A stretch of DNA of 64,000 bases from Salpingoeca rosetta. Taxonomy: Eukaryota; Protista; Choanoflagellata. How positions within the stretch are numbered: position 1 is the stretch's first letter; the number at the start of each line of letters is the position of its first letter. Shown piece after piece: positions 1-7,400 of the stretch. The stretch is from assembly GCA_033442325.1 (NCBI GenBank), contig JAWQFM010000015.1:320590-384589 (forward strand). The letters are read 5' to 3'. The notes beneath the pieces were generated by a model that was not told where the DNA came from, did no database searches, and saw nothing but the letters and a program-made list of their open reading frames with translations. Made by a program: the position numbers and the translations under genes.

Positions 1-870
1 ATCCCACACCCGCACCGTCTTGTCACAGCTCCCAGACACCACACGCGTCCCATCAGGGCTAAACCCAACTGATGTGACTTCACGCGTGTGCCCCTCGCAC
101 AGTGTCAGCTGCTCGCCCGTCCGCGCATCCCACACCCGCACCGTCTCGTCAAGGCTCCCAGACACCACCCGTGTCCCATCAGGGCTAAACCCAACCGAGT
201 TGACAAACCCCGTGTGCCCCTCGCACTGCGTCAGCTGCTCGCCCGTCTGCGCATCCCACACTCGCACCGTCGCGTCATAGCTCCCAGACACCACACGCGT
301 CCCATCAGGGCTGAACCCAACCGAGAAGACCCAATGTGTGTGCCCGTCGCACTGGGTCAGCTGCTCTCCCGTCCGCGCATCCCACACCCGCACCGTCTTG
401 TCCCAGCTCCCAGACACCACCCGTGTCCCATCGGGGCTAAACCCAACCGAGGTCACACTTTCCGTGTGCCCGTCGCACTGCGTCAGCTGCTCACCCGTCT
501 GCGCATCCCACACACGCACCGTCTTGTCCCAGCTCCCAGACACCACCCGTGTCCCATCGGGGCTAAACCCAACCGAGGTGACACCACTCGTGTGCGCCTC
601 GCACTGCGTCAGCTGCTCACCCGTCCGCGCATCCCACACACGCACCGTCGCGTCAATGCTCCCAGACACCACCCGTGTCCCATCAGGGCTAAAGCCAACC
701 GAGAAGACACGATCCGTGTGCCCCTCGCACTGCGTCAGCTGCTCACCCGTCCGCGCATCCCACACCCGCACCGTCTTGTCCTCGGTCCCAAATGGACTGC
801 CGCTTCCAGACACCACGCGCGTCCCATCAGGGCTGAACCCAACAGAGGTGACCTCACTCGAGTGTCCAGT
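1..870 (-). repeat. 126-nt (42-codon) tandem WD40-coding repeat, about 7 copies in the window, high DNA identity
   Basis: A recurring unit, gcatcccacacccgcaccgtc...cccagacaccac.cg.gtcccatc.gggct.aacccaac, with 126-bp period. Confidence 0.95.
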
Positions 871-2615
871 GATGACCAACTTGCAGGGGCTGCGGGCAAG
901 CACCTTCGGAATGCGCAGGAGGCAGTGATTCGTTCTTGCTGCTCGTGCCAGTGTTCGCTGCGCCTGTGAAGCAAACCAGTGTGATTGCAACGGTATGCCA
1001 CCAAGAAAACAACCTGCGCCACGTCGCAAGGCATCCTTCTCACTCAGCCTCGGCGCCCAGTGTTCCCCGAAAAGGGAGCCTGTGTCATCAAGCAACTGAT
1101 ACATGTCATTGTCCACACCGAGCAGGGCTGTGGTCAGCTCGGCCAGCTCCTTGATGAGGGGCCGCCCACGTTCGGCAGAATACGCCTGCAGCAATAGCCA
1201 CTGCGCCATCGCTGCCGTTGCCTCGCGTTCCGTTGGCGCTACACCCGTGCCCTCGAATTGCGCCAGTATGTTCTCGTTCATGGAAAGACGTGGCTGTAAA
1301 AGCACATCCCTCCACGCCTCGACGCTCTGCCTGGCACTCGCAGCAACAGCAGCGCTGGCCTCAGTGTCGGTGCCATGCCCTGATTTGCCTGTTGCCTTGT
1401 CTGCAAGCGCTCGTGCACACTCGTACAAGTGCATGTGGCCATGCTCCAGCGCGTACTTGGTGACGGGCTCGTCCAGGACGTCACTGCCTGGCTCCAACAG
1501 CCCATGCGAGCCGCTCAGAAGCCCTCGGTCCTGCAGCACGCGCAGGCACGCGCGAGCGAGGATGGCGTGGCCTTGCCGCACGTCCACAAAGTGAGCACCA
1601 GCTCGCTTCTTGTCCGTGAGGAAGTCGTTGACGGTCTTGTGCAGGGGCTCAATCACGTCGTGCTTGCTGCTGCTGGAGAAGAGGAGCGATAGCGCACTCA
1701 GCAGCCGCTTCGTCAGCGCCTTAAGCTGCACCCGGTCACCACCGCACAGCTCATGCAGATCCTCCACGTGCAGTGGCTGGCAGGAAGCCACAATCGCCGC
1801 CAGCACGTTGTGCAGGGTGCCTTGCAGTGCTGCCAGCACCTCCTCATCCTCACCCGCCACCACCTCGAGCCGCGCCCGAATGCGGTCCAGCGTCTCCGTG
1901 TACGTGCCGTCAACGATACTGCCGCCAGAGCTGGCGAGCAGAGCATCGACACCCGCCGGCCTTAATTGCTGCTTGCTCGACTCGTCCAGCTCCTCCAAGG
2001 CGCCGGCAACCAAGGTGGCTACGAGGAATACATCATCCGCTCGATGTGCGACACTGCAGTGCCGCAGCAGCACGAAAGATAGCACGGAAGGTCAGAGGGC
2101 GGCACAAGAGCACGGCGCGCGTAAACAAGAATGGAGGGATGGAAGGATGGGCAGCTGGACTTGCTGGAAGGACATGAGATCAAAATGCCGCACACACACA
2201 AACGAACACACGCCTCAAGAACATACCTGGCTTGGGTTCTTGCTACTGAGGCTGGCACTGTTGATGTGTACGTGGTTGTTGCTGTGACTGTTGTGAACGT
2301 CGTGGCTGTGGTGGTGTTTGCGTGCAGGCTCGATTGCCAGTCTTGAACTCTCTTGTACAGCACATGATTCACACCCAAGTGCTCTTGCAACACGCGCAAC
2401 AAATGGCGTGGATCGGCGCGTTGATGGAGGTACGGCTGGGTAGATTCTGGGGGACAAGTTGCTTGAAGGGTACGAACGAGCTCCGTTGTCGTGTTTGGTG
2501 TGTACGACAGGCCACAAGCAGTGGCCAAGGTTGATATCTCATGCTCAGTCAGAGTGTGGAAAGCGGCAGTGACGTCTGCCAGCGCCGCGTTGGCGTCCGC
2601 CGAACCGCGCTCCAT
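1..2615 (-). CDS. NLR-like (NWD/HET-E-like) protein, 3' end runs off the window: N-terminal helical (possibly death-fold) domain, Thr-rich linker, NACHT-associated helical/winged-helix region, highly conserved WD40 repeats
   Basis: ATG at 2615 (MERGSAD...). Phase-2 GT-AG intron 2226..2054, then an open frame from 2053 to the window edge. It reads RADDVFLVATL, LHKTVNDFLTDKKRAGAHFVDVRQGHAILARACL, KYALEHGHMHL, then about 7 repeats of GHTxxVxSVGFSPDGTRVVSGSxDxTVRVWDAxTGEQLTQCE. The ORF track misses it because no stop lies in the window. Confidence 0.85.
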
Positions 2616-3118
2616 ATCCTGTTCTTGTGTAGCTTGCTTTTGTGCTGTCGTTGATAGAAAACTGAATCCAGTTGCTCCTTTTTTTTTTTGCGCGACACAC
2701 AAAAACAAACCAAACAAACCAAACAAACGTTGCTCTCGCACCAAACCAACCAACCATCATCATCATCAGCATCATCACCCCAAGAAGCAACCAACCACAC
2801 CACGCCGCCGCACACCCACAATCATTGTTCTCTTCCAACCAACCTGCCTGCTCTGCCTTTGTGTGTGTGTGTGACAAGCAACCACTATCGTCAATTTATC
2901 TGCTCCAGCCAACCATACACCGCACACACTGCGGCACGTTCACACACTCGCTTGCCACACGGCGTGAACACCACCAAAGGTCACGTTCCACAAGACGTGT
3001 GTGTCATCAACGTTGGTGATCATCACGTGAGCTCTGTTTGTGACACACGCGATTCTCGGAACTGGTCAACCACACGCGCCACACCCCATCGATTCAAGCA
3101 ACCAATCACACGAGGTAT

Positions 3119-3170
<52 letters not shown>

Positions 3171-3321
3171 TGTGTGTGTGTGAGTGTGCGTGTGTGTGTG
3201 TATTGCCAAACTTGCTTCACCAGAACCCCACACGTGTCCTTCACGCGCACACGGCCATCCCCTCCTCCTCATTCCTTCTTTCTTTTCACACACACGCACA
3301 CACACACGCACGCACTGTAGA

Positions 3322-4351
3322 ATGGCAACTCAGACCAACGAGGAGGCCCTGAGCCACCTCGAGCAGCCACCGCCACCACCACAAGTTGCTCCTCCTCAAC
3401 AGCAACAGCACGAGGAACATGAAGAAGAGCTTTCGTTCCACACCATCCTGCAAGGAATACTTGTGCACTTTATGCTTGGCGATCTCGATCGCAACGCTCC
3501 ATTTGTACGTTGACTATGACTCGATCACCTGTGTGTGCGTGCGTGTGTGTCTGTTTGTGTGTTTGTGTGCGTGGAACAGCAATGCCAAGTCACACAAGCT
3601 CGACCGCATCACACGTGCGCCTCACGCTTGTTCCTGGTCTGTCTTCGCTTTCATTCCCTTTTTGCTTCCCGTTTGTAGTTGCAGCAGGTGTCCACCAAGT
3701 GCCGCGAACTGCTGGCCAAGGACTACATCGTTGAGGTTTGATCTCCACGCCAACTTTTGCCTTTGCACACACCAGCACGCCTTAATTGTGATGCGTGTCT
3801 TTGATCAATCAATGCGCCATATCCAACACCTTGAGCTCACCAACTCCACATGTGATTCGCAGGACCTGGACAACAGCGACGGCCACCTGTGCCCGCATTA
3901 CCCGCACACCATCTTCTTCCTCGCCGACGATCGCAACAGGTGCACGATGCTGGTGCTGGCTTGTACGGCTTGCGGAAGTTGGCAGGCGTCGTGTGTGGAG
4001 ACACGCCTTTTCGCTTTGCCTTGTTGACACTCTTCTTGTTCTCACTACGGCGCCCTTGCTGTTCCAACCACAGCAGCAGCGACAGCGACGCCGCCACCAC
4101 AACAACAACCACCACCAACACCACCGCGAACAACAGCAGCGGCAACATCAACGACGACAACACCAACAGGAGCAACAGCGATGATGAAGAAGAAGGCGAC
4201 GATGCATCCACGGCTGCCAGCCAGCGCGCCGCGAACCTCAAGAAGCTGCAACGGCTCATCCGCAAGGCCCAATATGCGCGCTGTCGCCGCCGCTTCCCCG
4301 TGCCGGTCATTCGCGCCTTCAACAAGGTACACACACACACACAACAAACAA

Positions 4352-4437
<86 letters not shown>

Positions 4438-7400
4438 CTGCCTTGAGTGTTAGCGCATTGCTCCATATGCATGTTTGCAACACCATCTCCCTGCTGCTCT
4501 GCACTGCACTTCACCGCATACACAGCTGTCCCCTCCCTCCCAACCGCATACGCACTGCGGCTGCTTTTACACTTCTCTCTCTCTCTCTCTGTTGCGCTTT
4601 CGTTCGGTCGCTGGCGGCCTGGCCATTGTTTTCTTCTTTCCGTTATGCGTCTGTTGCTTCTGTGCTTTGTCCGGTCCCCTTTCCTCTTCAACGCTTCATC
4701 CGATTGTGCCGTGCTTTCCATTGGTCGGTTGGTTGGCTGTTACTGTGGTCCAACCCAACGACCGCCCCTCATGTCCTGTTTCCGTGCACCCATCCATCCA
4801 ATCATTCGTTATCTTCTTCTTCTTGTTGTCCTGTTTATGCCCAATCCACCAGTGTATGTCTCTCTTCTCCGCCTTTGTGTTTTTGTTTTCCTTGCTCCGC
4901 TCTCAACCCAAACGCGCGCCAATCCGTTGGCCTGCATTTGCTGCTCATTGCTCTCCAATTGTCTGTTGATCTGTCTGTCGGTTCTGACCTGCCAACCGAT
5001 TCGTCGTGTTGTTATTGTTGTGTTCAATTGTTTCAATTTGTATTAACTATTTTCTTTGCGGTTTCGTTGTTTTTTTTTCCTTCCTTCCACGCTGCCCACT
5101 CACACCGCACAACGCCACCATGTACTTATGCAATCCCCACGTCTCCTCACACACTCTCCCCTCACTTCCCCTCTTTCCTTCCACCACCATCACCACCATC
5201 ACCACCATCACCGCCATCACCACCAGCACATCTGCCGGTCGGCCACGCTGTCGACGTATGAGGAGATAATGTTCCGCCTGGGCGTGTCCTCTGTGTACGC
5301 GTATGCCTCCAAGTACTTCAGCGACAGCATCACCCCCGCCGCCACAGACTTTGAGCACACGGACGTCGACGACGACGACGACGATGGTGATGGCGATGGT
5401 GACGATGATTGTGGTGAGCAGGCGCACCTTGGCCAGGATGACGTGCGCGCGTGCGTTGGTGGCAGTGGACTGCGCGGCTGCACAGCCATTGATGCGCACG
5501 AAGGAATGGCCGCAAGCACAGACGAGCAGCAGCAGTACGACGACCAGCAGCAGAATGGTGGCAACAGCCGTGCACAAGGAGACGCGCTGACAAGCGCATC
5601 CACAGCTGCGGCCACCAGCGAAGTCCACAGCCATAACAATGGCAGCAACAGCAACAGCAGCAGCAGCAGCAGCAGCGGGACGGGGAGCGTGCCATCCACG
5701 GAAGCGCCTACCGAGCGCGGCGATGGCGTTGATGTTGATGGCGCTGAGGTGGTAGCCACACTGCACCAGCACTTGACAACAACGACGGTGCACGATGTGC
5801 ACATTGGCCTGAAGCGCCGCGCCGACGAGCAGAACACCACCGCCATCGAGGATGGAGAGAACAACGACACCACCTGTACTGGCAACGCGCTTGCTGGCGA
5901 TGATGATCATGATCATGATGGTGGTGATCACGATGACGATGTTGTTGTTGTCGATGGCAGCGCCCACCGCGGCGACGGTGCCGCTGTTGCCGACAGGGAG
6001 CAGCGCGAGCTCATGGCGAACATGGCTGCCATTGTGCACGAGAGCGAGGAAGAGGACGAGGAGGAGGCGGTGATTGTCCGCCACACGTCCACCAGCAGTG
6101 AGAGCGGCAGCATCACCCCGCGCGGCTTCAGCAGTGCCACAAGCGGCGCACAAACGCCAAATAAGAAGCCAGAGTCAGTTTGTGTTGTGTTGTGCTCTGT
6201 TGCGTTGTGGTTGTGGGTGCTGTGGTCGTGGGTGCTGTAGTCGTGGGTGCGTTGGAAGTGTTCTGTCCATTACTCATTTTGCATCTCCTGCATCGCGTGC
6301 CCAATGCTGCCATGCGTATCCGCTCACCCCTTCATCATCTCCCGTGTGCGTGTGTGTTCTGACTCGCCTGCCAGGTCTGCCCGGGTGGTGTCGCAGCACC
6401 GCAGTGCCGACATCCAACTCCTCGACGCTCTGAGTACGTCCATGGTGACGTGATGGTGGAGGAGGCGTCAGCGGTGAGAATGGGACAAGACTATCCACAC
6501 ACACGCACACACACATACATACATACACACACACACACACCCCGCAGCACAAGGAGAGTGCTCCACAGCGAGTGCTGACACCTTGCATTCGGTGGCGGTT
6601 CGGAACCGATGTTGCTGACGCCAAACATCCAATGCACGCGTGCATTCCTTTTTTACTCACTGCACATCATGTTCTCTCAACCTCATCCCATCCTGTGCAG
6701 ACGTGAAGTGGATCTTTGATCTGATGGTTGAGAACCGCAAGCTCAAGTACCGCTATTACGTCTCCTCCTCAGAGAAGGCCGACGCAGAACGTGAGGGCGC
6801 GAGAGAAGCGCAAATGGGGAGTGGGCGGGTGGTTTGGTCTGGAGTACGAGTGTGGCTACCATCGTACGATGTTTGTGTGAGTATGTGATGCGTTGGCGGA
6901 AGGGCGATTGCTTGCTCAGGCGCATGATCACAACCTCCACACCCTGGCAACACCACATGAACGCGCATGTGCACACATTTTTGTGTGTATGTGTACTCAC
7001 ATACCGCATGTGCATGTGTACTCACATACCGCATGTGCATGTGTACTCACATACCGCAACCCACTTTCCACCCTTCATCACCACCACCACGAATCCCAGG
7101 CCGCTACGACCGGTTCTCGATTGTGGCGGTTCCGTATCCAGGGGTGGAGGATTTTGCCCACTGCGAAGCAGACGAGTTTGACGCCTTTGGAAAGGTCTGG
7201 CATGCTTGCATGTGTGTGTATGTGTGTGTGTGTATGTGTGCATGTGTGCATGTGTGCATGTGTGCATGTGTGCATGTGTGCATGTGTGTATGTGTGCATG
7301 TGTACATGTGTGTTTGAGCAGAATTGGCATGCAGCTAGCCTTGCATGTGTGGATCGGAACCGCCAACACCATTGATCACGCCTGTCATAAACGCGTGCAT

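Follow-up and report, generated by a model that had tools for sequence, protein, structure and literature searches.

The minus strand at the left end of a 64,000-nucleotide stretch of Salpingoeca rosetta DNA (the whole stretch being called here the window) encodes a tandem array of WD40 repeats that are nearly uniform except at five codons per unit. I propose that a transcribed protein of NLR ancestry has its ligand-binding end in this array, with a scaffold homogenised within the array and a recognition face diversified blade by blade, and that the protein may act as an adaptor or a decoy. I consider this reading probable, and the argument for it begins with the features of the gene. Repeat units are taken to start at the G of GH and are numbered U1 to U7 downward from position 867.

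2227..2615, minus strand: exon 1 (ATG at 2615-2613), encoding an N-terminal helical domain of five predicted helices and a Thr-rich linker
2054..2226, minus strand: intron, GT..AG, phase 2, from reading of the sequence and from a spliced contig
868..2053, minus strand: the part of exon 2 outside the array, encoding a helical/winged-helix linker of about 394 residues
1519..1926, minus strand: linker patch (residues 43-178), 408 nt with 86.5% DNA identity to the paralog gene on GL832995.1 by blastn
867-724, minus strand: U1, 48 codons, six of them extra, in the B-C turn (SGSG-SPFGTE-DK)
723-598, minus strand: U2, 126-nt WD40 unit
597-472, minus strand: U3, 126-nt WD40 unit
471-346, minus strand: U4, 126-nt WD40 unit
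345-220, minus strand: U5, 126-nt WD40 unit
219-94, minus strand: U6, 126-nt WD40 unit
93-1, minus strand: U7, 31 codons, after which the window edge cuts the unit

The seven 126-nt units occupy 867..1 and continue past the left edge of the window. TRF finds them with a period of 126 (6.2 copies, 87% matches, score 1147), and Pfam recognizes WD40 in seven stretches (E 3.8e-87). An initial annotation, made from the letters alone, had described a near-identical array of 42-residue WD40 repeats at 1-870, and these searches, together with the identities between units, confirm it and place it on the minus strand. High internal conservation has been defined as an identity of about 85% across 100 residues or more (PMC4986451), and the present array falls within that definition, with a mean pairwise protein identity between units of 85.3% over 283 residues (range 79-90%). 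At the level of DNA the mean pairwise identity is 86.4%. The residues listed at the outset as variable are all correct by the codon table of the units: the pairs that follow GH(S/T) are SE, DR, SG, ES, HW, GF and RE; the residue after V is T, F or N; and the pairs within SGSxDx are I-A, W-K, W-K, Y-A, L-E and C-K. The loop insertion reported in the first repeat is likewise present, as six extra codons in the SGS-x-D turn of U1, which stands at the edge of the array and is the most divergent unit. Columns 1, 3, 33, 40, and 42 show minor variation among units.

The differences between units are concentrated at columns 4, 5, 7, 23, and 25. DNA identity is 92.9% on the 37 scaffold codons versus 43% on these five hypervariable codons, and 19 of the 24 amino-acid state changes (79%) fall within them. 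The homologous five columns take 20 of 80 changes (25%) in the array of XP_004987796.1, a paralog in the same species. By the counting method of Nei and Gojobori (NG86), dN is 1.25 at the five columns, while the scaffold shows a dN of 0.021 and a dS of 0.256, giving a scaffold dN/dS of 0.08. Bootstrapping over codon columns puts the 95% confidence interval of pN at the hypervariable columns over pS in the scaffold at 1.87-5.01, with a ratio of 1 or less in 0 of 5,000 resamples, a ratio that may be inflated, since conversion and codon bias (GC3 0.74) may both depress dS. The non-synonymous excess that the initial annotation would have looked for codon by codon is thus found at the variable codons, as judged by counting methods and a bootstrap on seven units of one genome. 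The contrast is of repeat with repeat in that genome and not of allele with allele, and purifying selection fixed for each blade would look identical.

The five columns were picked post hoc, and it is useful to have a set chosen on other grounds. In HET-E, positive selection has been found at codons 7, 9, 25, and 27; the first pair brackets codon 8 in the d-a loop and the second brackets codon 26 in the b-c turn, codons 8 and 26 being under purifying selection (PMC1805685). Columns 5, 7, 23, and 25 of the present units flank the invariant V6 and D24, with the same spacing. Taken alone, they show a dN of 1.19 versus a scaffold dS of 0.26. They account for 14 of the 24 changes, a number matched by 42 of 111,930 four-column sets (p = 3.8e-4), and this a priori test lifts the circularity in part only. 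Are the hypervariable columns simply those where the structure tolerates change? Eight control columns (3, 16, 33, 36, 37, 39, 40, and 42) are undefined in the consensus of 44 relatives and lie outside the five. At these family-variable columns, which are not on the top face, dN is 0.095, so simple structural tolerance does not explain the excess at the five.

AlphaFold2, run on the array with an alignment of 44 sequences, predicts a seven-bladed propeller (pLDDT 97.5, pTM 0.93) in which each unit contributes strands A (columns 6-11), B (17-22), C (27-31), and D (37-41). In the model, the D-A loop ends with columns 4 and 5, strand A has column 7 as its second residue, and the B-C turn contains columns 23 and 25. 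No variation between units is seen in the A-B or C-D loops. In the meander topology of WD40 proteins, the D-A and B-C loops are on one face of the propeller, the top, and the A-B and C-D loops are on the other. By this topology, and by analogy with the HET-E model of PMC1805685, the hypervariable columns are predicted to lie on the top face. The mapping of variable sites on a propeller model, another check that had been suggested, thus puts them in the D-A loop and the B-C turn, on what topology makes a single face. The solved structures closest to the model are 7big, 5yzv, and 2ymu (TM 0.94-0.95, rmsd 1.1-1.2 A, 43-47% identity).

Then there is the uniformity of the scaffold. Within the array, scaffolds are 89-97% identical, versus at most 78% to any unit in the 267 other proteins gathered. 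Those proteins include the family relatives and the 120 listed top matches of a WD40 word search through proteins of 376-1,197 residues in a set of 5.8 billion. The listed top matches of that search, made with the WD40 part, are generic near-consensus fungal and bacterial WD40 proteins, at most 61% identical, and no paralog sharing the scaffold is among them. Judging from these comparisons, the scaffold occurs, within the set of proteins gathered, in this array only. A four-gamete test within the 126-nt unit fails for 19 of the 36 informative site pairs, and in four of those 19 both sites belong to the scaffold. The units are by this test mosaics of each other, and no simple tree accounts for them. 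[quoted passage not shown]

An apparent array of this kind might be manufactured by an assembly that collapsed or mis-joined a tandem repeat. Short-read unitigs do end inside the array, and some contigs carry other letters at hypervariable positions. Nevertheless, 20 runs from eight studies, all with one organism label, contain 74-91% of the sampled words of 1-2700, every unit-specific hypervariable codon is covered by contigs free of differences, and the deviant contigs are accounted for by further units past the window. An artefact is scarcely credible in the face of this. Contigs of this kind contain additional forms of the unit, distinguished from U5 almost solely at hypervariable codons (positions 326/327/336/337 and 262/272/273), and in one contig the letters of columns 4-5 are different. 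Two units or more must therefore be present besides these seven, whether past the window edge or in another part of the genome. In DNA runs, the summed unitig depth of the array is about 7-14 times that of its flanks, which gives a crude estimate of about 12-14 genomic copies of the scaffold 31-mers (depths in RNA runs fitted a copy-number reading poorly and were left out). This number would fit one array of 14 units, predicted to form two propellers, as far as so crude an estimate can suggest. No alternative alleles of the locus appear in the four runs examined, all under the same organism label. A joint between 205 and 338 that might be taken for a deleted unit is better explained as a contig of another unit with different hypervariable codons than as a length variant.

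The reading frame of the gene stays open through at least 684 codons of exon 2 and through 129 of exon 1, and in-frame stop codons precede the ATG at 2615. Exon 2 starts at 2053 and extends past the window edge, leaving the end of the array outside. A spliced contig of 2,930 nt from run X17 joins 2053 to 2227, and contigs from three other runs are unspliced. The gene is therefore transcribed, with the predicted splicing, and the basis for its expression is this single spliced contig from a run presumed to be of RNA. As far as position 3100, the X17 contig contains no upstream coding exon. It remains unspliced over 485 nt or more on the upstream side of the ATG and extends about 750 nt past 3100, representing either a long 5' UTR or an overlap with a divergent plus-strand open reading frame that starts near 3321. 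Microsatellites, (GT)n/(CA)n and related, are very frequent throughout the window (3120-3201, 4329-4438, and many more; 203 TRF rows) and are typical of the non-coding DNA of this genome. Word searches with the linker, through proteins of 376-2,906 residues, did not find the gene's own annotated protein, nor did exact look-ups of four open reading frames of the window, and the C-terminal units of the array are for that reason unseen.

The protein begins with a domain that has a relative within the species: residues 9-97 of exon 1 align with residues 47-137 of PTSG_12916, an S. rosetta NPHP3_N protein, at 34% identity (E 5e-13). No Pfam family exceeds threshold in exon 1 (DUF6085 has an E of 0.036). 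AlphaFold2 gives the domain five helices with moderate confidence (pLDDT 65), and the model has no significant match in the PDB: Foldseek returned nothing with an E below 1, only insignificant death-fold rows, and the ESM Atlas search came back empty. Neither a HET (TIR-like) domain nor any other cell-death effector domain was found in exon 1 by Pfam or by comparison with PDB folds.

The linker shares 52% identity (E 3.6e-95) with residues 690-1074 of XP_004987796.1 from S. rosetta and 33-41% with PTSG_12916, with proteins of Barroeca monosierra, and with Monosiga brevicollis XP_001748462.1. In these relatives, an NPHP3_N/NACHT domain lies directly upstream of the region homologous to the linker, and HTH_TANC1 is found there too; the linker itself matches HTH_TANC1 with an E of 6.7e-6 and 26.4 bits, just under the cut-off of 27. 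Pfam finds no NACHT or NPHP3_N in exon 1 or exon 2, and no remnant of NACHT was detected in the whole 64 kb by tblastn searches that took the N-terminal halves of seven relatives as queries. Without a NACHT/NTPase domain, the gene is not an NLR of the HET-E type. Sequence homology instead makes it a derived, NTPase-less member of the choanoflagellate NPHP3_N/NACHT-WD40 (STAND) family. The N-terminal part and the post-NACHT linker are joined through the Thr-rich linker across the single intron, and the gene looks like one that has kept the first N-terminal domain, the linker, and the propellers, and lost the middle, including the NTPase. A horizontal origin from bacteria was considered and rejected: both the N-terminal domain and the linker are specific to choanoflagellates, and the WD40 repeats stand no nearer to bacteria than to fungi.

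The NACHT-WD40 protein XP_001748462.1 of Monosiga has a 126-nt array of its own (5.7 copies, 90% matches), with variation at the same codons. In that array (positions 5830-6555 of the stretch of CH991564.1 examined, L003), units 1 and 3 carry +1 and -1 indels exactly at the hypervariable codon 23, and unit 3 ends in a TAG; its annotation bypasses the indels and the stop by mini-introns. The Monosiga array is either broken or mis-sequenced.

According to the initial annotation, repeats are shuffled between paralogs. No such shuffling was found between this array and the paralog units examined. The WD40 units of XP_004987796.1, the nearest annotated paralog, have only 66-71% DNA identity to those of the present gene, no exchange of units is evident with its array or with the other proteins gathered, and unitig depth suggests only about 12-14 copies of the scaffold 31-mers genome-wide. 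What does appear to have moved is the linker patch. Its counterpart is at 5188-5594 of the stretch containing the intronless XP_004987796.1 gene (L001), and its dS is 0.375, versus a saturated pS of 0.75-0.77 in both flanks. By its sequence, the patch points to gene conversion between two NLR-like paralogs that lie on different scaffolds, or else to a chimeric origin. Family members then do exchange sequence, but the patch is not evidence that they exchange repeats. PTSG_12916 shows no conversion with the present gene. Within XP_004987796.1, residues 1500-1625 (L001 7498-7875) form three consecutive, near-identical WD40 units with mostly the same hypervariable residues, a recent and little diversified tandem duplication in an otherwise diverged array.

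How might such a protein have arisen, and what might it do? Read from its amino end, it would consist of a helical N-terminal domain, the helical/winged-helix region found as a rule behind NACHT, and lastly WD40 propellers, the first of them made of the seven repeats. Among fungi and multicellular bacteria, a homogenised array of repeats whose binding positions are hypervariable is a hallmark of fast-evolving recognition receptors. Exchange between units inside the gene, by unequal crossing-over or by gene conversion, would keep the scaffold uniform, and the top face would be the recognition surface, with selection for different residues on each blade as in the HET-E/NWD sensors. Lacking the NTPase switch, the protein would be unable to signal by itself in the manner of an NLR. 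It would more likely be a binding partner, an adaptor, or a decoy for NACHT-bearing paralogs, or perhaps a stand-alone binding platform, and these suggested roles are the weaker part of the proposal. The immune or allorecognition role put forward in the initial annotation would be a candidate function.

An alternative view is that this is an ordinary WD40 scaffold with one fixed, asymmetric partner, its blade contacts under purifying selection, the rest homogenised by conversion, and nothing diversifying at all. Top-face residues do vary by blade in every WD40 protein, the consensus of the 44 relatives is undefined at the same columns, conversion is active (the units are mosaics, with a scaffold dS as low as 0.26), the runs examined show no polymorphism, and there is no NTPase switch. 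It is asking a good deal, however, that conversion tracts spare five codons spread across 66 nt in every unit while other tolerant columns (16, 36, 37, 39, and 40) are homogenised. Moreover, the gene's relatives are NACHT-WD40 proteins, and high internal conservation is rare outside of NLR-type sensors, at 0.4-1.2% of repeats (PMC4986451). A fixed partner is on these grounds unlikely, if still a view to be taken seriously.

Decay offers another account: NACHT was deleted, and what remains is transcribed but functionless, its repeat pattern ancestral or copied from functional paralogs. NACHT is indeed gone though both modules that flanked it have NACHT-bearing homologues, no protein bearing the linker turned up in word searches over 376-2,906 residues, and the Monosiga array has its frameshifts and stop. 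A decaying gene would not be expected to keep a frame open through at least 684 codons of exon 2 and the 129 of exon 1, to have its intron spliced correctly, and to hold scaffold dN/dS at 0.08, and no donor array with this scaffold is found among the proteins gathered. I regard decay as improbable, and return to the reading with which I began, a homogenised scaffold that bears a diversified recognition face.

It is tempting to carry that reading further. Choanoflagellates might possess an NLR-like system that diversifies its WD40 face, in which a NACHT-less sensor, decoy, or adaptor pairs with NACHT-bearing paralogs by way of the N-terminal and winged-helix modules that they share. The model for such a pairing is provided by sensor/helper NLR pairs. 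So specific a scheme is a long shot, but if it is true, then it would be a pre-animal case of an immune receptor with divided labor. If the pattern reflects real diversification, then the closest relatives of animals possess the raw material of variable intracellular recognition. S. rosetta is genetically tractable, and the idea is therefore open to direct testing. NACHT-WD40 genes of S. rosetta and M. brevicollis are already on record (PMC3879445), and choanoflagellates are reported to lack LRR-type NLRs with Death or CARD (PMC6040629). A full-text literature search turned up no account of choanoflagellate WD40 arrays that are homogenised and hypervariable.

Several known systems resemble the gene in part. 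The closest structural matches, those from Nostoc punctiforme (2ymu) and Thermomonospora curvata (5yzv) and the designed WRAP-T (7big), also have near-consensus repeats, but they are prokaryotic or artificial and do not have the choanoflagellate linker; the likeness is one of fold and consensus-like sequence, not of family. The choanoflagellate NPHP3_N/NACHT-WD40 proteins are family: the linker here is homologous to theirs (E from 3.6e-95 down to 1e-24), a WD40 C-terminus and an intronless repeat exon are shared, and the N-terminal domain is held in common with PTSG_12916. They carry the NTPase module that the present gene does without, and their units are less alike, with protein identities of 62% in XP_004987796.1 and 40-48% in the Barroeca homologues, versus 85% here.

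The likeness to HET-E, on which the initial annotation built its view of a recognition receptor, holds for the homogenised repeats, for the hypervariable top-face sites, and for the NACHT-WD40 proteins among the relatives; it fails for the gene itself, from which NACHT is absent. HET-E and the NWD proteins have NACHT and a HET (TIR-like) or other cell-death effector N-terminus, and neither was found in the present gene. The fungal genes are also marked by exchange of repeats among family members and by repeat numbers that vary between isolates; what is seen here is a private scaffold, 66-71% DNA identity to the units of the paralog, and the conversion-like patch in the linker. They belong to fungi and this one to a choanoflagellate, where RIP is not applicable, and DNA identity between units is reported to reach 100% in NWD genes, as compared with 86% here. 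What the array shares with HET-E, HET-D, and NWD of Podospora anserina is the 42-residue unit, about 85% identical from copy to copy, homologous hypervariable pairs about a conserved residue, an excess of non-synonymous change at the hypervariable sites, and signs of concerted evolution (PMC1805685, PMC4986451).
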